Shown: piece after piece, positions 1-54,890 of the stretch
Position numbering within the stretch: the first letter of the stretch is position 1
Layout of the letters: each line of letters opens with the position of its first letter
NCBI RefSeq assembly: GCF_000315625.1
Contig: NW_005434587.1
Coordinates: forward strand, 231,336-295,335
Length of the DNA stretch: 64,000 nucleotides
Source of the DNA: Guillardia theta CCMP2712
Lineage: Eukaryota > Protista > Cryptophyta
Direction: 5' to 3'
Program-made: the position numbers and the translations under genes
The notes under the pieces: generated by a model
Databases searched by the model: none
The model's input: the letters and a program-made list of their open reading frames with translations, nothing else
Told to the model about the DNA's origin: nothing

Positions 1-3000
1 TCCTTCCGCCATCCTGCACAGCCAGCTGCTTGCCAAGATGAGCCCAGCTGAGAAGATCGCAGAGTCGGTTCGCTCGCAGGGGCTGCGGCAGCGGCATGGC
101 TACACGCTTGCTCGGCATCCTCCTCTTTTCAGCGTGAGTGGCCTGGAGGCTCCTCCCTGGTGCCTGACGGGAAGTTCAGGACGAACCAGAGTCGTTCTCA
201 GGTGGGGTAGCGGCTGGAGGGACCGCAGCACAGCTGGGGTTTGTGCACTACTGGAAGAAGCAGGTCGACTCGTCTCCAGCAGGTTCGAGGAGGAGGAGAT
301 GGGGGAGAGCAGGAGCAGGCGCAGGAGCAGGTGCAGTAGGAGTGGGGGGAACAGGAGTTGATTGTGGGAGGAGCAAGAGGAGCAGGAGCAGGAGCAGGAG
401 CAGGAGCGGGGAGTGGTTATGGGAAGGAGTTGTCATTTGATTGCAGTCTCGTCTCCTGCTCTACGGACGGGAAATGTTTCTCGGTTTCTCAACTTCTCCC
501 ACCACGTTGGCGAAGACGAAGACCTGTCGCCTTTGGAGGAAGCAAAGGAGCCAAGATTCGCAAGAGTTCTTTCCCTCTCCGCTCCTACCAAGTGACGAAG
601 CGTCGACTGGCATGCTGCTGCTGATGTTGATCGGCAGGCCACTGGGAAATGTTGTTCTTGCCGGACCTCTCTTCACCAACAACGTCAAGTCCTTCTCGTG
701 CTTGCATGTGTTGATGTTGTGTTGCCAGGTGTTGTCAAGAGAGCAGATTGAACAATACCTGAGAGAGGAGATGAGGAACTTTTTCAGGAATGAGAGGTCT
801 TGCTGGTTGCTTGTTGTTTGACAGATGTTCATGCAGTTTCAAGGAGAGGAAGTCCGTCTGTGAACGATGGATGCCCTTTCTTCATGTGTTAGAGAAGTAA
901 GATGATGCTGGTGACGTGCGGAAAGTTGCAATCATGATGAAGTTGCGGACTAGGATATCACGATGTTTGCGTGAGAATGTCGTCACTGAAGATTACTTCT
1001 ACGTGAGGGAGGTGCTTGTGGAGGAGGAAGGCGAGGACGATCGGGAAGAAAGGGAGAAAAGAAATGGGCTGAAGGAAAGGAGGAGGACGAGCACAAGGTA
1101 GATGATTGAGCTCGTCAGAAATGTAGAAAAGTTTATCTGTTCTATCAGGAGCTGTCGGAGCCTCTTGAACCCAAGGAGGTCATTTCTTGTCTTGTTTTCC
1201 TGCTCCTGTTCTGTGCTGTTCGTTTGGTTTACATTCTCTCTTCTATTCTCCCTCTCTTTCTCTCTCTCGCTCTCTGTCTCTCTGTCTCTCTGTCTCTCTG
1301 TCTCTGTCTCTGTCTCTGTCTCTGTCTCTCTTCGCTTTACCTTCTCTTTTCACCATCTTTCTCCTCTTTGTGTTCTTCATCTTTCGTTTATTGTACCTCT
1401 CTCTCATGGTTATGCAACTTCTGATTTTGTACTTAATTTCTGTTTCTCACTCGTCATTCTCTCTTTCGTTTGCATTCTCATCAGGTTTGGAAAGAGAGGT
1501 CACTGATGGACAACGAGATCTCAATCTCCCTGGAGGACAACATGTCGCGTCCCCTTCCTCCGCTTCCCTACGGTGAAGAAGATGAAGATGAATGGCCTGA
1601 GTTGCCTCCTCGAAACATCGGAGTTTCAGTCGACATGGTGAGAGGTCCCAAACAGTCTGATGTTGATGTCTCATGAGAAAATTTCAAAACTATGGAGACA
1701 ACAACATTTGAACATTCACTTTTTTCCCTCATCCCATTCCACTCTGTTTCTGGTTCAAAACGCTGCAATGACGTTGATGCTTGTCAAAACCTCTTTCTCC
1801 GTCCTTGTAACTCACAGATGTCGCAATAGATCTTGGCGTTCTCAAAGTACGGCGGGGAGAAGCTTCAGTCTGAGATCCTTCAGCAGTCATTCGATGAAGT
1901 GCACATTCCTGCTTCGGTGACACGTTTCTGTCCACCATCACCCCAGCTGAACCTGAGCAACAGGAGAACGAGAAGCTGAGAATCGACCATGTCCCGGTCT
2001 GCAGACTTGCCGAGCTGATCAGCCTTGTGAGGTCAGACGATGATATTCACATCGACGTTCTCCTTCACGTTCTCCTCCTCCCCCCCCTTCCCCGCCCGTC
2101 GACTCCATCCTGCTCCTTGTCCTGCTTCCCATTCCCCTCCTCCTCCTCCTCCTCCTCCTGCTCTTGCTCCTGCTCCTGCTCCTCCCTCCCTCCCTCTCCT
2201 CCTCCTCCTGCTCCTTGTTTGTTTTGTTATTGCCGATGGTGGTGAGATCGTTGAAAAGAGATGTCGTCAGGCAACAGGTCAACTCTTGTTATGATCATGA
2301 CATCATGGTCCAACAATGCTCTTCGCGCATTGAGGTATCAGGAGCTGCCGACAGCCATGGCTGATGTCCTGCTGGGCAGCTGCTCAAGGAGAAGCTTTCA
2401 GTGCTCAATTGCAACCAATCGGATCTCGAGCAGATCTGTGAAAGCATGAGGTAAGGAGGAGGAGGAGGGGAGGAGGAGGGGAGGGAGGAGAAGGGGGAGG
2501 GGGAGGGGGAGGGAGGAGGAGGAGGAGGAGGAGGAGGAGGAGGAGTGGAAGGGGGAGGAGGAGGACTGAAGAGAGAAATACGAATGAGAGGGGGAGGAGG
2601 AGGCGGCGGTGGAGCCGAGAAACTGAATGCGGGTGCTCAGGAACGCGATGAAGGAGGAGAAAAGGAGATCAGCCATTGTCTCCTCGTCAGTGAACATCAG
2701 CTACTATCTCCGACATGGCGGGCTGAGTCTGGGCGGCTTCACTCCTCGAATGACCAAGGAAGGGAACGAGAGGCTGGTGAGTAGAGGGAGGGGGAGGAGG
2801 GGGACAGGGGAAGAGAGAGGAAGGGAGGGAGGGACGAAGGGGGAATGGTGAAGAGAGAAGAAGGGAGGCAGGGCAGGGGAGGGCAGGGCAGCTAGGAGAA
2901 GGGAGGGAGATGAAGGAGGGAGGGGAGGGGAGGTTGGGGAGGTGGGAGGAGAGGGAGGGGAGGAGAGGGAGTTGGTTTGATCATTTGCGGTGCAGATCAA

Positions 3001-3042
3001 GGCATTGAGTCCTCCCCTCGTTCGATCCTCTCTTGCTCTATA
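1..3042 (+). CDS. Multi-exon hypothetical protein (5' partial; could be two genes)
   Basis: Chain of GT-AG-bounded open segments, e.g. ELSEPLEPKE (~1149-1178), VWKERSLMDNEISISLEDN (~1485), ILAFSKYGGEKLQSEILQQSFDEVHIPAS (~1830-1916), LLKEKLSVLNCNQSDLEQICES (~2380-2450), last exon IKALSPPLVRSSLAL* ending 3042. No recognisable domain. Confidence 0.4.
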
Positions 3043-3214
3043 GAATCAAATGTATGTATGTAATGCCTTCCCGTTCCTCCCCCTCCTGCTCCCTGCTCCT
3101 CCTCTCGCTCCTGTCCCTGTTCCCGCTCCCTTCCCCAATCCTGCTCTTCGTTATCCTCCTCTTGCTCCCGCTCCAACTGCTGCTGCTCTCACAGTCTCTG
3201 TTTTCCACTCATCC

Positions 3215-4460
3215 TCAGGGCTCTTTCTCCTTGGGAGGCCTGACAACTCCTTAGTTCCTCTTCGTCTCTCCTCCTCTCCCTGTCACCTTCCTCGCCGTTT
3301 TGCTGCTGGTTTCGGCGCAGGAGGGAGGCCTGAAAACGTCTCAACAAGCGAGGAGAGGGGACGAGAATTTTTCACCTCCTTCCTGCTTCTCACCCTCCTG
3401 GTCTTCCTGTTGGTCCTCTTTCTCCGGCTTGCTCGACGTCGCAGCCGCCGAGTCGACCTTGCGAGGGCGACCTCTCCTCTTCTTGGTTTCGGTGCCAGTC
3501 TCCACCTTCGCTTCTGTTTCTGATGTCTCTCCGCTTTCTTCGAAGCTCGATTCTCTTTCCGCATCCTTTCTTGCCTCCTCCTCCTCCTTCACCACCTTGG
3601 TCCGTCTCCTTGCAGCCGGAGCTACGACCTCCTCCTGTTCCTCCTTCACCTTCCGCTGCCTCTCGTCCCATCCAGCCCTAAACTCTGTGCTCGATCCCCC
3701 TTCCATTTCTTCGTCCCTCCCCTCAGGCCTTCGCACTTTCCTCACCTGCCACTTCTGATTGGCGGGCAAACGCTCCCGCCTTTCGCCTCCTCCTCCTCCT
3801 CCTCCTCCTCCTCCTTCCCTTCCTTCCCAATCTCTCACACCTGCCCCTTCTCTATCTGTCCTTCCTCTTGCTCCTGCTCCTCTCCCTCCTCCTCTTGGGT
3901 CTTCTCCCGCTCCTTCTCGCCACTGGCCCGTCGGTCTTCCTGTGAATTCTCCTCTCCCCCCCGCGGCTGCGCTCCTGCCTCTCCTCGTGACCTCCTGCCC
4001 GTCTTGTCGGCCGACTGCGCGATGTCAGGAAGAGCCTCTTGGAGAAGAGCCTGCAGAGGAGATCAGCATTGGCTCTGACAGGAAGAGAAGGAGATGAGGA
4101 GACAGGGGGGGAGAGACTAGACGGAAGGAGAGGAAGAGTAGAGCAGAAGTGGCTGAGATGAATTGGGCTGAGAACTGCATCTCAACGGAGAGGAGAGGAG
4201 AGGAGAGGAGAGGAGAGGAGAGGAGAGAGAGGAGAGGAGAGGAGAGGAGAGGAGAGGAGAGGAGAGGAGAGGAGAGGAGAGGAGGAGACGAGCGGTGGAG
4301 AGAAAGGCAAGACCTCCTGCTGCTGCATTTTGTCAAGGATAGCCTTGCTCTGAGAGCTAGCTCGCTCCATCAATGCTCGACGGGGACGGCGCCGACCGAA
4401 TGGATCGACGATGCCGCGCGTGATGTCGGACTGGGAAGTGGAGCCGGAGTAGGAATCCTG
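3215..4460 (-). CDS. Acidic low-complexity protein region with two AT-hook motifs (5' boundary uncertain)
   Basis: KKRRGRPRK at ~3458-3484. A second hook, AAKRRGR|PPKEKEP*, forms only after removing a 47-nt GT-AG intron (3240-3286). Stop at 3215-3217. Confidence 0.6.
4187..4285 (+). repeat. (GAGGA)n microsatellite
   Basis: Direct reading; intronic. Confidence 0.95.
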
Positions 4461-47391: not shown

Positions 47392-50300
47392 ATGGGTATG
47401 AGGAGGATGAGGGGGGATATTGCCGCCTCCTCAGCGGCGGAGCACCGCGGAGGGAGGAAGCAGGAGAGAGCGGGAGAGAAGCACGTAGGAGGCGCGGAGG
47501 CGAAGGAGGAGGAGGCCTTCTCATCGCAGATCAGTGCTACTGACAGGAAGGACCACGTCCAGCCTTCGCTCGCTTGCGCTCGGGGCGGAAAGGAACCGCC
47601 CCGAGCTCCTTTGAACAATCTCGAACGTCCTCAAGGTCAAAACCCCTGCCAGGTGAGACGCTTGAGGGGATGAGGAGCGGTGAGAAGGGGGGAGTTGGAT
47701 AGATCACGCCTGTAGTAGTGAGAGAGCCTCGCTAAGGCTCCCCATCTGCAGTCTGTGTCCTCATATAACACCCTGTGGGCACATGACCTTTCCTTGTTGG
47801 CATGTTACCACCTATCATCCTGTTGGTACGTCGATAGTCACTGACACAAAGATTTCTTGCTCAGGGCACGAGGTCAACCTTCTTGTCCTGTGGCTCCGGC
47901 CACCACAGGGCAAGCCCTTGAAGACACTTCAGACCCGGCAGGGGGTCCGGGTGCTGGCATTTTGGGCGAAGCCCTAGCATTTGGAGACCTTTTGCGTGAG
48001 AAGGTAACTTGAGTGTTGGTCAATGTTGTTGCTGCCCATCGTCTGAGTTGCACGTGTCTCTGTTCGCACTTGTTGTATGCGTGCGATTATGAATGATTCA
48101 TTTCCACATGCTGTACTTGTGTGAAAATGACTGGTTGATTCGTCGTGCAGTTTGCGCAGGTTGTTGGCCTTTCAAGCGCGTCTACTGTTGAAAGCTCTTC
48201 ACTAGCCGACAACTTTTCAAGTCGGGGACAAGGACAGCCAGCATCCTCCTACGAGCCTGAGGAGCAGCAGAACCGTCCTTGGCAAGCGCCACAAACCGTG
48301 TACCTAGAGGAATTTCACGGCAGCCAGAAGTATTCCGAAGATCAACCGAGGAGGGAGACAAGCGGAAAGGTAGGGCTCTTCCTCTCCATGCCATGGTACT
48401 TGCAATGACAATGATGTTGCGTGCAGAAACTTCCAACCGGGTTTGCCAGAAATCCGTTCCTGCAAGACTTGCACGGGACCAAAGGACAAAAGTCTGTTGC
48501 TGAGACCAAGAGACCTCTAGAGAATAGAGAGTCGACTTCTTTCAAGTCAGACAACAGTTCAGAAGGAGCGCCTGCAGACAAAACAGAAGATTTCGGAGCT
48601 CCACAGCGCATCCTCAAGTCGTTTCTTGATACATTTAACAATTCATTCATTGGAGGTTCTTTGTATTGTGGTCTTTCACATCGAACTTACACGTGAACAG
48701 AAAGCTCTGAGGGTCGAGGCTCAAAGGCTGAGAGTGTTAATTCTGCACAAGGCGCTCAGGAGTCTCCCGTAGATTCAAATCCTACCCGTGCGGAGCCCAG
48801 TGCGGTTGAGCTCTTAGACGGAACCCCAGCCATGGTTTGAGCCGACGAGATCTGACGTTTCGCCGCTGACTCTTCACAGGTGCGATGCATGCGCAAAGGT
48901 CATGGTGCGCTGGAGTGTCCAGTTTGCCTCCAGCTGTTCAACAGGCCTGTCACACCTGTAAGCCTCAAGATTCCATCCGTTATGTAGATTGCTCACTTGG
49001 CTCTTTCGCAGGTCAACGCCGAGTGCAGATGTACATTCTGCGAATCGTGTTTTGTGAACCTGGTCAAGTTTGGAGGACGATGCACGAAATGTGGGCGAGG
49101 GCTTCCTCGAGATCCGATGCAAGCTGTTGTCAACGCGGAAGTGTTGGAAGCGATACAAGCTTTTCAACAATATGGAGGGGAGGACGCCGAGTATGCTACC
49201 CTTATGACTGGTTTGAAGGGCAAACCCGACAGGCCCAAGTACCAAATCTTGAACATGGAAGAATTCAAGCTTGATCCGAAGCCTTTGGCTTCGGGGGCTT
49301 ATGGTCAAGTATTCCGAGGAACATGGCTAAAGCAGAATCTGCCAGTAGCAGTGAAGAAAGTTCTACGAACAAGCGTCATGTCCCGAGAGCAAACGATCGA
49401 GAGCTTCAGAAAAGAGGCTGAGATCCTGGCAATGCTTGATCACCCCCATGTGCTCAAGTTGTACGGGGCTGTGTTGGACGAAGAGAACATTTGTATCGTG
49501 ACGGAGTTGGTGCCAGGCGGCTCTCTCTTTGATCTGATTCACACGAAGCCGTTGCTGAAGCCCGAGGCTGTCATAGCGATCAGTACGGGAGTCTGCAAGG
49601 GCATGACTTACTTACACAGCATGGGAATCATTCATCGCGACCTCAAACCTGGCAACCTTCTGATGGGGGCGGTCGCGTCTCCTAGTGGTCCGCAGCTGGT
49701 TGTCAAAGTCGCAGATTTTGGCCTTGCGCGGGTCCAGGTAACGATGACAGTGAAAGCGATGCTTCCCTCCCTGCTTCCCTCGCTTCCCGGCTCCCTCCTT
49801 TCCTTCCTCTCTCTCTCTCTCTGTGATCCTCCTGCTATCTGTTTGCTCTGATTAATCTCCCGTTTCCAACAGGATTCTGCGAGGACCATGACGGGGGGAA
49901 TAGGAACGAGTCAATATACAGCACCAGAAGTGCTTAGATCAGAGCGATACGATCACAAGGCTGATGTGTACAGGTATATCTTGCAGCCTCTGATGTCTGA
50001 GGCTGAAATTGCCCAGTTTCGGGGTTATCTTATGGGAGATTCATGCTCGAAAGATCCCATACTCAGAAATGAATCAAATGCAAATAGCAGTGGCGGTTGC
50101 CACGCAAGGTTTGCGATTCAGCTGCTGCTGTGTTGTCCTGATTTCTCTCTCAGATCAACGGCCACCACCTCCCAAGAACTGTCCTGCACCCTTCTGGCAG
50201 CTGATGCAGGTGCTGCCTCCTCAGCTTGTAGCGGGAAGATGTTAACCATGGGAACGCAGCATTGTTGGCAGACTCGTCCGCACGATCGCCCGTCCTTCCC

Positions 50301-50712
50301 AGAGGTCCTCTCACAACTCGAGGACATGCAGGTACATGCCATGGTCAAGTTCCTTCGGTCATCCTCACTTCTTGTTCAGTTCGTGTTCAACCTGGCAGCG
50401 AGTGCTCATGGTTCCATCCGTGCCAGCTCAGCGATGCGGCAACAGCAGTCGCAACAGGTGAGAGGCTTTGCTCCCTTGAGCTTCTTTTTGCACATGGTCT
50501 GATTGTCATGCAGAACGCAAACGCGTTGCAACAACAGAAGGTGATTGCTGTCCTGCCTCGACGATCGTCCGGGGGGCTGAAGATGCTGATGAAAACTTTT
50601 ACAGCAGCTTGCTGAGCAGCAAATGAGGATGAATAACCTACAGATCGATCCGCATGCGAGGGTCCGTATTCTGCATAGCTCTTCACTACATTGCATTTGA
50701 CTTTAGAATGTG

Positions 50713-50753
<41 letters not shown>

Positions 50754-52112
50754 CTCGGTGATTGTCTTCATCCTTGCATCTCCGTCCTTTGACTCATTCC
50801 ACTCGCAGCCTGCAGCGAACATTAATTATTCTCGTGAGTCGCGCGTTGGCTCACGATGCCCTTTGCTCACATGCAACAACTTACAGCACAATCTCCCATG
50901 GAGCACTTAAACACGCCCCCAGCAGAGGCCGTCTCGCCGAACATGCAGGTCAAGCTTGTGATGGAAGCAAGAGAAGGCATGTGGAAGTGACAGCTGGGCA
51001 GCAGTACCGAGAGAGCAAGAATCTCTACGTGCCTGAGATGTTCGCGACGATCTCAGAAGCGATTGCAAACGCTCAGATGGAGGATCAGGTGATGGAGATG
51101 AGAGGAGGTGACGCGGTGGCTGATCTGTTGCCCAAGATCTTCGTGTCTCCTGGCCATTACGTGGAGACGATCTCTATCAGGAACCTAACTGTTTCGATCG
51201 TTGGAAACGGCAACATGCAGAACATTCTTCTGGAGGGGGTACGTTGAAACATGTGTCTATTCCGCTATCGTGCTTGTGTTCTCTTGTTCTCTTCCCTTTT
51301 ACTGATGCTAGAAGGACTCTGATCTAACTTGGCTCCTCGGCCTCCTGCTCACTTTGACTGCAGCCGACCGGCGCCATGGTCATCTCGCAAGAAGGCGGCC
51401 TCGTGCGCATTAGCAACCTCATGATCAGGAGCGCGGACGCTCCTGCCTACAAGTTAGTTGGAGGACAACTGGTGAAGACTCTTAGCTCTCTGTTTGCTCC
51501 TTCAAGCGCCTGACGCGCTGCGCAGATAATGGAGGATTGCAATGTGAGCGGAGGGAAGATGGGCCTCTGGGCGTACGGGGGATGCGAGTGCTGCATCCGT
51601 CGATCTGTCATGTGAAGATTCTTCTCCCTTGTCTCGCCCGCCTCATTTTCTCCCCCAGCTGCCGATGCGATCGGCAAGGAATGTATTTAGGGGAAAAATG
51701 CGTCGCAGTGGTGGAGTCCTGCAGGTGAATGTTGAATCATGCACAGTCAGTCGAGTTGAAAGTTCGTTTTCTCTTCCTGTTCCTGCTCCTGCTCCCGCTC
51801 CTCATCTTCTTCCTCTTCCTCTCCCGCTACTCTCCGTGTACACGTTCTTTTCCTTGTGAACCTGTCTCTCTCGTTCTCTTTCCCTTTATACCAATATCTT
51901 TCTCCTCTCTTCGCTTTCGGTTTTTCTCTCCCTCTCCTGCTCGGGCAGCATTTTTGAGAACGGCGATCACGGGATTCTTGTGCTCAACGATGGAGCACGG
52001 CTGAGCATGACGCGGAGCATGGTCTCTTACAATCAGGGAGCAGCTGTCGCCATCGATCAGGTCAGTTTGTTGTCCAACGTGACGCATGCACGACAGTAAC
52101 CTCTTCTCCTTA

Positions 52113-52188
<76 letters not shown>

Positions 52189-52357
52189 TCTGTTGCATGC
52201 TTTTTCCTTCACCTCGTCCTCTCGCTCTTCTCACCTTCTCCTTCAGTTTGCGGGAGGGAAGGTGGAGAACAACGACCTCAGGAACAACATGCAGGGCCCT
52301 TGTCTCGTGGGCGTCCAGAGTCAAAACTTGGTGTCTGTCACCAACAACTTGACCTGA
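47392..52357 (+). CDS. RING finger - TKL (Raf/MLK-like) kinase - polyQ - right-handed parallel beta-helix protein
   Basis: RING LECPVCLQLFNRPVTP|VNAECRCTFCESC...CTKC. Kinase SGAYGQV, VAVK, HRDLKPGN, DFG, GTSQYTAPE, DVYSFG, CW...RPSF. (CAG)n exon. Then VPEMFATISEAI...IFVSPGHYVETI...IFENGDHGILV...VENNDLRNN. Stop 52355-52357. Confidence 0.85.
52113..52187 (+). repeat. (CCTG)n microsatellite
   Basis: Direct reading; in the last intron of the RING-kinase gene. Confidence 0.95.
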
Positions 52358-52538
52358 GCTACTAGAGCAGTGACTGTGTGACTTACAACAAACTTTTACT
52401 CTCACACCTTGACCTCCTCCTTTCTTCTCCCTCCTCCTGTAATCTCCTTACTCCACCTGTCTTCACTTCATCCTGTCACACATACCTGTACACCCTTCTC
52501 TTCTCACCCTTCGATGTCACTCACGCTGCCTCGATCAC

Positions 52539-54890
52539 CTACTCTCTCCTCCCTCCTACACTGTGTGTCCCTGCCAGAGCTCGTGTATCTCCAGCTCCAA
52601 TCGCGCCGCCTGCTGACGTGTCATAGCTGCTCGAGCTCTCAATTCTCCGCACCTCTACGAGGCTCTTCCTCGTCTGGTATTCCTCCACGAACTGCCGTGA
52701 GAGCCTGCTGGGATGCGCCGAGTCGTCGAGCTGCCAAGATGTGAGAGGAGGAGAGGAGGAGAGACTTCGGGACGAAGGATGACGAAGCGCCGCCGCCGCA
52801 GCAAGAGGAGGAGGAGGAGGATGGGGGCAAGAGAGGGGAGAGAGGAAGTAAGGGCAGTCGAAGCAAGAGGTGGAGGAGGAGGGATAGGAAAGGTCAAATG
52901 GGGCAGAGGCAGCAGAAGAAGAAGGATCAAGGAGCAGGAGCAGAGGCAGGAGCAGGGGCAGGAGCAGGAGCGGGGAGCTCTCCAACTTTAGGCTCTCTTT
53001 CTGTGCTTGGGAGCGGAGCCTCCGGGAAGAGGGAAGAGAAGACTCTGCCCTTGTCCTCCTCGAGCTTCTGCTCGACCTCCTTCATCTGCACGGGCATGTC
53101 GGTAAGAGAGAAGATGAAGAGGAGGTGGAAAGAGGAGGAGGAGGAGGAGGAGGAGGAGGAGGAGGAGGAGGAGGAGGAGGAGGAGGAGGAAGATACCTGC
53201 TTCAGCATCTCGGCTGATCTCTTGGCCTCTTCCTGGTTCGTGCAGACAGAGAGAGCGACCTGAGTTCCGTCAGAAGGGAGGGGGGGGAACAGGTGAAGGA
53301 GGGTGAGGGAGAGGGGAGAGGGAGGGAGGAGGCAGGGGGGATGGACTGGGGCAACTCACTTGGTTGATCAGCGAGTCAACCATAGTCACAGGAGCCTTCG
53401 GCTGCTCCTGCCTGTCAAGCATCTGCCAGCTCGTAAACCAGCTGGAGGGAAGGGTGATCTGGTCAGACCTGCAAGAGAGCCTCACAAACTTTGACAAGTC
53501 GCGACTGCTGCGCGTCAAGTCGCTTCCCGAGACCCGCCAGCCTCTCGGGCTCCTGGTGAGCGAGTCAGACAACATCCCCCCCCGCTCGCATGCCTGACCA
53601 GGCTTCCGTCTTCTGAGCTGACTCCAGCAGCAGTAGCAGCAGCAGGGAGAGCAGCTGAGGAAGGAGAAGGAGAGGAGAGAGAATCTCCTCTCTTTGGTGA
53701 CTTGGTCTCGTCGTCTTCCTCCGTCCCACCTCCTTCGCATGACTTCCTTTTGCTCGCGCCCTGCTGGCTTTCAGCTGAGCATGTTGATTCCTCCTCCTCA
53801 CCTGGTGATGTGGCGATGCGTCTGCATGCTCCTTCCTCCTGACTTCCCGCTTCACGTGCATCCCCAGCGTTGCTGCCAGCTCCTACGATGGTGTGAGGAG
53901 AAGGTGAGGAGAACGGGGAGGGACCTTGACGATTCTGATGCCTTCCTCCTCCTCCTCCTCCTCTCGCGGATACAAGAGCATCATCTGTGTGAGGCGAGTG
54001 AGGGCAAGACTGATGGAGCAAGTCGAGGGAAGCCTGAGGGAGGAGTAGATAGAGAAGCAAGGCACCTTGCGAAGAAGCCCAGGGAATCTGAAGGAGGAGG
54101 AGGAAGGGGGGGGGGGAGATGGGGGAGAAGGGGGAGAAGGGGGAGAAGGGGGGGGGATGAGAATTTCCTAACCGTCGACGATGTTATTGTAACTCGACAC
54201 GCTGGTGGTCGTTGTTTCTCCTTCATCGGCTTCCAGATCAGAATTTCCGTCACAATCTAACAAGATGTGTCAGGTGGGCCCAGCATTTTCCCAGCTCCCC
54301 ACCAGTGGGTCCAGCACCATGTCAGGACCCTTCCCGAACGACAGCACAAAGCTCTCCTCTTCCTCCTCCTCCTCCTCCTCCCTCTGCGCTCTCCTGACGA
54401 TCTTTACGTCGAACTCTGTGCTGTCGTCGTGGGAACTCGTGACAGGGAAGTACGCCACTTTCCCCGTCCTCGCATCCAGGAAGCAGCATTTCCCCTCGAA
54501 CACGACCTCTTCTCCTCCTGTCCAACCTGCTCCTCCGCGTCATCCTCAGCCATCCTCTTTTTCTCATGCACCTGCTCGCCGCCTCGCCGCCTCATCCCCT
54601 CCTCCTCCTCCTCCTCCTCCTCCGAACGTCGCATGCAGGAAGGCCTCTCGTTCCATAGCGATTATTCGGATGAGGCGGGTTTGGTCGATGCATCCCTTCG
54701 TCCCCCTGCTCCTGCTCGCCTCCTGCTCCTGCTGCTTCTGCTCCGCCTCCTGCTGCTCCTGCTGCTCCTGCTGCTCCTCTACCTCTACATCCACCTCTCT
54801 CCTCTCTCCTCTCTCTTCTCTGCCATCCTTCCCACTGCGATCCCATCTCAGTCCCTTCGCTCGCATCACCATCGAGGTAGCTCCCCACAT
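52539..54890 (-). CDS. Multi-exon hypothetical low-complexity protein
   Basis: Coding-like islands between microsatellite introns: KGCIDQTRLIRIIAMEREAFL, GKCCFLDARTGKVAYFPV, RDLSKFVRLSCRSDQITLPSSWFTSWQ, SRQFVEEYQTRKSLVEV. Confidence 0.35.

Follow-up and report, generated by a model that had tools for sequence, protein, structure and literature searches.

A RING-type finger, a TKL-like kinase and a predicted parallel beta-helix encoded by one gene of the cryptophyte Guillardia theta

Do a RING finger, a protein kinase and a parallel beta-helix that lie side by side in a cryptophyte genome belong to a single polypeptide, and if so, what might such a protein do? The question is raised by a locus in a 64,000-nucleotide (nt) stretch of Guillardia theta CCMP2712 DNA (contig NW_005434587.1, positions 231,336 to 295,335), which is called the window below and in which all positions are counted. 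A first-pass annotation, made from the letters of the window, had proposed one chain running from a RING through a tyrosine-kinase-like (TKL) kinase and a glutamine run (polyQ) to a beta-helix. With about 50% G+C and numerous short GT-AG introns (43-224 nt), the region 47401-52404 has the make-up of a eukaryotic nuclear gene. We find that the locus is one nuclear gene of 24 exons on the plus strand, with an mRNA that extends from at least 47401 to about 52404 and a coding sequence that extends from the ATG at 48832 to the stop at 52355-52357. The architecture of its product is a new combination of known types of part, a RING-kinase like that of plant KEG with a beta-helix like that of FBXO11.

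The unity of the gene is seen most directly in its transcripts. Public sequencing runs that share about half of the sampled words of a 4.3-kb stretch contain spliced RNA contigs. In three of these runs, each from a different study, all introns listed between 47653 and 51363 have been spliced out at GT..AG. The contigs that were built from the k-mers of these runs (Logan) break only inside the 33-nt CAG run: an upstream contig (X5, 2287 nt) passes straight from exon 50605-50661 into CAG repeats at its end, and a downstream contig of 837 nt begins in CAG repeats and then contains all remaining exons through 52404. A JGI transcript contig of 3043 nt, L004, crosses the CAG run in one piece and matches all exons from 47459 to 52403 at 100%. 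The reading phases are compatible across 19 introns, and all exons from 48880 to the TGA at 52355-52357 are in frame. Translated exon by exon, the window yields exact ordered substrings of a 691-residue Guillardia theta protein from an MMETSP transcript (UniRef/UniProt A0A7S4P0M5, here P0154), the only differences being the glutamine run (Q8 in P0154, Q12 in the genome) and one glutamine at a NAGNAG acceptor. We therefore used P0154 as the reference for the product of the window. Searches with the window were run exon by exon, whole-protein work was done on P0154, and the exons were joined only to count frames, start codons and ATGs. The route to P0154 was a full-library search with the largest exon (49012-49737, 242 residues), which led to full-length relatives; a word search started from one of these then returned P0154. 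The features of the gene are as follows.

47401/47459-47652, 47865-48003, 48151-48369, 48427-48655 and 48701-48834, plus strand: the five 5' exons of the mRNA (spliced RNA contigs with GT-AG joints; L004 aligns at 100%)
47615..48831, plus strand: in-frame N-terminal extension, 252 codons when spliced, open from the stop TGA at 47612 (no ATG in any frame, where shuffling predicts 12.7 and a first-order Markov model 4.3; islands conserved as protein)
48832..48834, plus strand: first AUG of the mRNA and start of the 691-696-residue product, a conserved Met just before the RING (P0154, L004)
48910..49104, plus strand: RING finger of C4C4 type, split by the intron 48958-49011 (Pfam, PDB matches, conserved Cys)
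49279..50319, plus strand: protein kinase domain, TKL/MLK-like, residues 117-372 of P0154, in five exons (PF07714, PF00069, motifs)
50380-50457, 50514-50540, 50605-50661, 50716-50757, 50809-50833 and 50887-50948, plus strand: micro-exons of the Q/E-rich linker (RNA contigs, P0154, L004)
50716..50751, plus strand: glutamine run, (CAG)11 CAA, Q12 (genomic sequence)
51005-51088, 51137-51238, 51364-51471, 51526-51611, 51659-51724, 51949-52060 and 52247-52354, plus strand: the seven beta-helix exons, residues about 470-691 (Pfam, AlphaFold2, fold matches)
51089..51136, plus strand: in-frame intron of 48 nt (joint 51086>51135 in three runs; the stretch is missing from P0154 and L004)
52355..52404, plus strand: stop TGA (52355-52357) and a short 3' untranslated region (transcript contigs end at 52403/52404)

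The in-frame exon chain 48880-52357 that the first-pass annotation had drawn on the plus strand is thus borne out by the phases, the spliced RNA contigs, L004 and the identity with P0154. Its reading of kinase and beta-helix as one chain, which separate transcripts would have refuted, also stands: L004 joins the two, and in an unassigned marine contig (L010) they lie in a single open reading frame (ORF). Several of its boundaries have to be moved. The polyQ exon had been started at 50707 with the residues 'NVK'; the loose ends of the RNA contigs and a metagenomic relative of about 97% identity (L002) place the start at 50716, with no 'NVK', and the supposed TTTAG acceptor reads TTTGG in L002. 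The exon after 'NMQ' begins behind the second AG of the NAGNAG acceptor, at 51005, and one Q is therefore lost. The first beta-helix exon had been read as continuous coding sequence and contains the 48-nt in-frame intron; once it is spliced out, the protein is 16 residues shorter and the TISEAI and IFVSPGHY motifs stand nearer to each other. The donor of the beta-helix exon that follows has to be moved to 51471/51472, and the initiator ATG (48832-48834) is the last codon of the exon that precedes the former start coordinate, 48880, and so lies just outside it. As to the tandem acceptor itself (CAGCAG, 51002-51005), the distal AG is the one used in the transcripts examined; splicing at the proximal AG would lengthen the protein by one glutamine. 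The genome annotation of the gene (GUITHDRAFT_165291, XP_005825164.1, L1IQM6; 678 residues, "hypothetical protein") takes the other acceptor, and it is without the polyQ micro-exon (50716-50757) and the residues HCWQ (50260-50271), both of which are present in transcript-derived sequences. At the 5' end, a 30-nt upstream loose end of the contig X2 (before 47436) has no match in the window on either strand, and may be a distant 5' exon or a chimera. The raw RNA reads of the run X17, 13 of which could be aligned, are too few to define transcript ends or starts.

The N-terminal finger was compared with the pattern C-x2-C-x(9-39)-C-x(1-3)-H/C-x(2-3)-C-x2-C-x(4-48)-C-x2-C, that is, with eight ligands. 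P0154 fits it with C14, C17, C32, C34, C37, C40, C51 and C54, a spacing of 2-14-1-2-2-10-2. The first seven cysteines are kept in 9/9 aligned relatives and the eighth in 8/9, and a hydrophobic residue between C1 and C2 and a Pro after C8 are conserved across the family. BRCA1 is the best PDB match in a phmmer search (E 5.6e-6, residues 11-80), and its alignment reaches into the helix after the RING; RNF4 and RING1B are also matched, and as far down as E about 0.04 every PDB match is to a RING E3 ligase or to a protein with a RING domain. Among Pfam models, zf-RING_UBOX just passes its cut-off of 25.2 on residues 1-90, with 25.5 bits. The other RING models are below cut-off, and on the full protein every RING model is below it (E 3e-4 to 0.02). 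The likeness to the BRCA1 RING extends to the 'LECPxCL' start and the following helix, whereas the fourth ligand is Cys, not His, in Guillardia theta, and there is no known BARD1-like partner and no BRCT domain.

The kinase domain (residues 117-372) is matched by PF07714 PK_Tyr_Ser-Thr at E 8.8e-66 and by PF00069 Pkinase at E 6.2e-61, with the higher score for PF07714. The motifs GAYGQV, VAVKK, FRKE, HRDLKPGN, DFG and APE are intact (at 122, 139-143, 159-162, 235-242, 262-264 and 286-288, respectively) and conserved across the family. Among solved structures of natural kinases, the closest domains are those of MLK1 (6e-52), MLK4, ZAK, CTR1 and TAK1, with tyrosine kinases interleaved, a mixture typical of the TKL group. 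We read the domain as an MLK-like Ser/Thr kinase, probably of that group and predicted to be active, the group being taken from best matches and not from a kinome classifier. The earlier claim of a RING fold and a TKL-type kinase is supported as well.

Behind the kinase, residues 377-470 form a Q/E-rich linker that is spread over six micro-exons and in which full-length AlphaFold predicts, at low confidence, a long helix (394-421). The glutamine run within it varies between sources: the genomic Q12 reads (CAG)10CAA, or Q11, in L004 and Q8 in P0154, both of which may be assembly effects, and (CAG)5(CAA)5 in L002. Real variation in the length and codons of the CAG run is seen only against L002. 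The homopolymer is specific to Guillardia, and orthologues such as P0002, another MMETSP protein, have a Q/E-rich segment only. The length-variable CAG linker proposed earlier is weakly supported, and the conserved part of the linker is only the Q/E-rich segment, predicted to be helical.

The C-terminus had been expected to be a beta-helix, and this is what the models give. On P0154, PF13229 Beta_helix is matched at E 1.3e-15 (57.8 bits, cut-off 25.9) and PF05048 NosD at 25.2 bits (cut-off 23.6), and the PF13229/NosD cut-offs are also passed in P0002, P0152, P0153, P0155 and P0156. An AlphaFold2 model of residues 466-691, built on eight family rows, is a regular all-beta coil with a predicted local distance difference test (pLDDT) score of 89.3 and a predicted template modelling (pTM) score of 0.87. 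With Foldseek only right-handed beta-helix proteins were matched, at a probability of 1.00, among them pectin methylesterases, lyases and tailspikes. VIA-align superposed about 215 of the 226 residues on an alginate lyase, tailspikes, AlgE4 and pectin methylesterases (Z 20-24.6, root mean square deviation about 2.2 A; 217 residues for the highest Z), and the ESM-Atlas neighbours are Beta_helix/NosD clusters with template modelling (TM) scores of 0.87-0.90. According to these models the C-terminus is a compact right-handed parallel beta-helix of about 220 residues and of the Beta_helix/NosD (CASH) type. Its sequence, in a profile search against PDB, matches the N-terminal cap motif of a pectinesterase only (E 0.004), so the fold had to come from structure. 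Searched against Pfam one by one, the exons of the gene reveal the kinase and, weakly, the two RING halves, whereas those of the beta-helix are too short to match anything. Short exons, and not the absence of the domain, also explain why PF13229 has 115 six-frame matches elsewhere in the genome but misses this locus. AlphaFold on the full-length protein (14 family rows) has a mean pLDDT of 58.8, with 64-86 in the RING and the kinase C-lobe unmodelled owing to the shallow alignment, and was used only for the RING, the helix and the linker. The last beta-helix intron contains a long (GCCT)n microsatellite (52104-52194) beside CT-rich low-complexity introns, and the relative contig L001 ends within it. 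Just downstream, convergent transcripts of a neighbour on the minus strand (52393-52608) adjoin or overlap the 3' end of the gene by about 10 nt.

The same architecture recurs outside the window. The RING-kinase-beta-helix proteins are a small uncharacterised family, known to date from cryptophyte algae, with two paralogs in Guillardia theta and members in Hanusia, Chroomonas and unassigned marine contigs. P0002 (MMETSP, 682 residues, called a complete ORF) and P0189 (776 residues) are full-length and have the same architecture; in Hanusia phi and Chroomonas sp. CCMP1168 family proteins are present as partial models. In L010 a single genomic ORF of 763 residues runs without interruption through the RING, the kinase, the linker and most of the helix, and the last helix intron is at the same place as in Guillardia theta; in another unassigned marine contig, L007, the kinase C-lobe and the beta-helix share an ORF of 404 residues. 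Word searches that started from the helix or from the RING region returned only 7 and 10 proteins, respectively, all of them family members. No paper in the literature searched names the gene or the domain architecture. The second Guillardia theta copy, at about 151.1-156.3 kb of contig C16 (L003:3100-8320), has the same domain order with fewer and longer helix exons; its identity is about 45-50% in the helix part and about 80% in the kinase core, there are assembly N gaps inside the gene, and its single exons give sub-threshold Pfam matches only (Beta_helix E 0.006, DUF1565 E 0.27). One relative, P0003 (transcripts L005/L006), has a stop after the Q-rich linker and no beta-helix, and may represent an isoform, a retained intron or a helix-less paralog.

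A further property of the family lies upstream of the conserved Met. The spliced extension has 0 stops in the coding frame, compared with 6 and 12 in the other two frames, and matches P0003 as protein (E 5e-6), and the motif D-G-T-x-A-M-V-R-C around the conserved Met is kept across the family. The first 912 nt of the Guillardia theta transcript contain 0 ATGs in any frame, against 50 ATGs in the downstream coding sequence; shuffling would lead one to expect 12.7 (0/2000 shuffles were that low), and a conservative first-order Markov model 4.7 (P = 0.009). Relatives are similar: ATG is missing from L005 over 558 nt (2-559) and from L007 between 688 and 2614, and the extension of L010 starts with an in-frame ATG at 2936, after which none occurs for 1.3 kb (2937-4258). 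A single upstream Met, with no other behind it in the extension, is present in P0188 and P0189; P0007 and P0168, with internal Mets, are exceptions. In L010 and L009 at least, the putative upstream start is an AUG, while Guillardia theta has no upstream in-frame AUG; the only near-cognate codon in frame right after the stop at 47612 is the AUC at 47618. A conserved extension free of ATG suggests non-AUG initiation and/or leaky scanning, with two isoforms. We tentatively speculate, as a possibility that we hold to be rather doubtful, that AUG is avoided in every frame of the conserved coding extension of the family (60-450 codons). Ribosomes passing over a weak upstream start would then scan as far as 1.9 kb until they reach the conserved Met beside the RING, giving long and short isoforms from one mRNA, a design that has not been described for cryptophytes. 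The long isoform of Guillardia theta would need a non-AUG start, for which AUC 47618 may be considered a candidate only. The transcribed leader also contains a perfect 11-bp inverted repeat with a 7-nt loop (47578-47606, GCTCGGGGCGG ... CCGCCCCGAGC), which ends 6 nt before the stop at 47612.

What could a protein of this kind do? Three known systems offer comparisons. KEG is a plant E3 in which a RING, a kinase and interaction repeats are in one chain and kinase and E3 functions are coupled (PMC3697954, PMC5385374). The Guillardia theta protein shares with it an N-terminal RING followed directly by a kinase and then a putative interaction region of repeat type, but KEG has ankyrin and HERC2-like repeats where the 691-residue cryptophyte protein has a beta-helix. 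KEG is also much longer, at about 1600 residues. In FBXO11, a substrate receptor of SCF, the CASH domains are right-handed beta-helices that are taken to hold substrates (PMC8825234, PMC13394945). The likeness to FBXO11/FBXO10 would be that of an intracellular CASH/NosD-type right-handed beta-helix within a ubiquitin-ligase system; however, FBXO11 has an F-box (the ligase being supplied by SCF), three CASH domains, a UBR finger and no kinase, whereas the Guillardia theta protein has one short helix, a RING in cis and a kinase. The mixed-lineage kinases (MLKs) include the closest solved kinases, MLK1/MAP3K9, MLK4 and ZAK (E 6e-52 to 4e-45), with a HRDLKxxN loop and a tyrosine-kinase-like profile, and the helical segment directly after the kinase, predicted here at low confidence, is at the position of the MLK leucine zippers. 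In contrast to MLKs, the Guillardia theta protein is without SH3, CRIB and SAM domains, and the flanks of its kinase are the RING and the beta-helix. Against Pfam (E <= 0.1), P0154 has no ankyrin or HERC2-like match, and likewise no match to F-box or zf-UBR and none to SH3 or PBD/CRIB. Membership in KEG, FBXO11 or MLK families was rejected, as the defining domains are absent. The helix itself resembles Beta_helix PF13229 and NosD PF05048 of the pectin-lyase-like clan, in the cut-offs passed and in fold superposition, but most members are secreted or periplasmic and prokaryotic, whereas here it is the C-terminal domain of a eukaryotic RING-kinase.

By analogy with KEG, FBXO11 and the MLKs, we consider it probable, with moderate confidence, that the protein is a self-contained kinase-coupled RING ligase with a beta-helix recognition module. 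The beta-helix would recognise a protein or glycan ligand. The helical linker after the kinase may dimerise the protein as the leucine zippers of MLKs do, which would allow trans-autophosphorylation. The RING would recruit E2~ubiquitin, and bound partners or the enzyme itself would be phosphorylated and ubiquitinated, the two activities being coupled as in plant KEG. Two isoforms would probably be made: initiation at the first AUG, beside the RING, would give the short form, and the long form would carry a disordered N-terminal extension. We infer the E3 activity, the binding of substrates by the helix and the dimerisation through a coiled coil from these likenesses, and several points weigh against them. 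A literature search found no biochemical data for any member of the family. The Pfam support for the RING is borderline, with one model at its cut-off on the isolated N-terminus only, and the metal site is all-Cys and not C3HC4. The coiled-coil role of the linker depends on a helix predicted at low confidence, and a cytosolic location is assumed solely because no obvious signal or membrane segment is seen. The fold of the beta-helix occurs mainly in carbohydrate-active enzymes and phage tailspikes, so its ligand might be a glycan or its role enzymatic, and prokaryotic fusions of kinase and NosD (an Atlas lead only) hint that the helix may be a kinase-regulating sensor rather than a substrate adaptor.

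This last point can be developed into the main rival account, in which the helix binds a small or carbohydrate ligand and regulates the kinase allosterically, and the RING serves mainly for self-turnover or dimerisation. It would fit the nearest structural neighbours, which are carbohydrate-binding or -processing beta-helices, and an ESM-Atlas feature search that returned Pkinase + NosD clusters from bacteria (76 members) and archaea (58 members), as well as the fusion of Beta_helix/NosD to signalling modules (TIR, AAA, TPR) among the Atlas neighbours. The Atlas rows, however, are similarity leads that carry no alignment or E-value, neither a groove for a ligand nor a known sugar-binding motif was identified, and the helix is minimal, at about 220 residues, without the long loops that form grooves in enzymes; we regard such a sensor-kinase as unlikely, although its chance is not negligible. 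Much less probable still would be a catalytic helix, a polysaccharide lyase, esterase or epimerase carried on a kinase. Alginate lyases, pectin methylesterases, a mannuronan C5-epimerase and tailspike depolymerases are indeed the top folds, and there is the weak match to the pectinesterase N-terminal cap (E 0.004), but that match is to the cap motif and does not cover the catalytic region, the identity to those enzymes is 8-18% and limited to the helix core, the conserved G-x-H-G turn differs from the epimerase DPHD motif (judged by eye only), and no secretion signal is seen whereas such enzymes act on extracellular or periplasmic polymers.

Doubt may also be directed at the other end of the protein. 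If the zinc module lacked E3 activity and served for structure or dimerisation, much as the cysteine-rich domain in front of RAF kinases does, this would account for the failure of all RING Pfam models but one to reach cut-off, for the atypical all-Cys ligand set and for best PDB matches (BRCA1, RING1B) that are RINGs in need of a dimer partner. Yet the spacing fits the RING consensus, the family keeps all eight ligands along with the hydrophobic residue between C1 and C2 and the Pro behind C8, and the PDB matches to E about 0.04 are RING E3s or RING-domain proteins. All-Cys RINGs such as that of CNOT4 are active E3s. We think a finger of this kind quite improbable. Finally, the RING-kinase and the beta-helix might be two neighbouring genes that were joined by read-through or by a chimeric assembly, as the break of the Logan contigs in the CAG repeat and the end of the relative P0003/L005 transcript after the linker, without a beta-helix, could suggest. 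Against this, the repeat lies within the single contig L004, the contigs that flank the break both end in CAG and share one exon, the reading phases match across 19 introns, the ORFs of L010 and L007 are uninterrupted, and the same domain order is found in the paralog and in several species. Such an artefact is extremely unlikely, and separate genes or read-through were rejected on the strength of the single transcript, the matching phases and the uninterrupted ORFs of relatives.

The Atlas feature search also returned rotifer clusters that pair Pkinase with U-box or ZZ fingers. Like the prokaryotic clusters these are leads only, and they hint that pairings of a kinase with a beta-helix and of a kinase with an E3 finger arose elsewhere too.

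A kinase-coupled RING ligase with a beta-helix would be of interest in several respects. At the level of annotation, a micro-exon proves to be missing from the public model GUITHDRAFT_165291. If dual initiation depends on the AUG-free coding leader, the gene would offer a clear natural case of leaky scanning over a kilobase range. A kinase and a RING ligase in one chain are rare, and such proteins are models for the coupling of phosphorylation and ubiquitination, with plant KEG as the main studied case. The family described here is a compact version of about 690 residues with a different and structurally simple recognition domain, in a group of organisms, the cryptophytes, in which signalling has hardly been studied. 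After FBXO10/11 it would be the second eukaryotic setting in which a CASH-type beta-helix forms part of ubiquitin-ligase machinery, and it could help to define the ligands of these helices.

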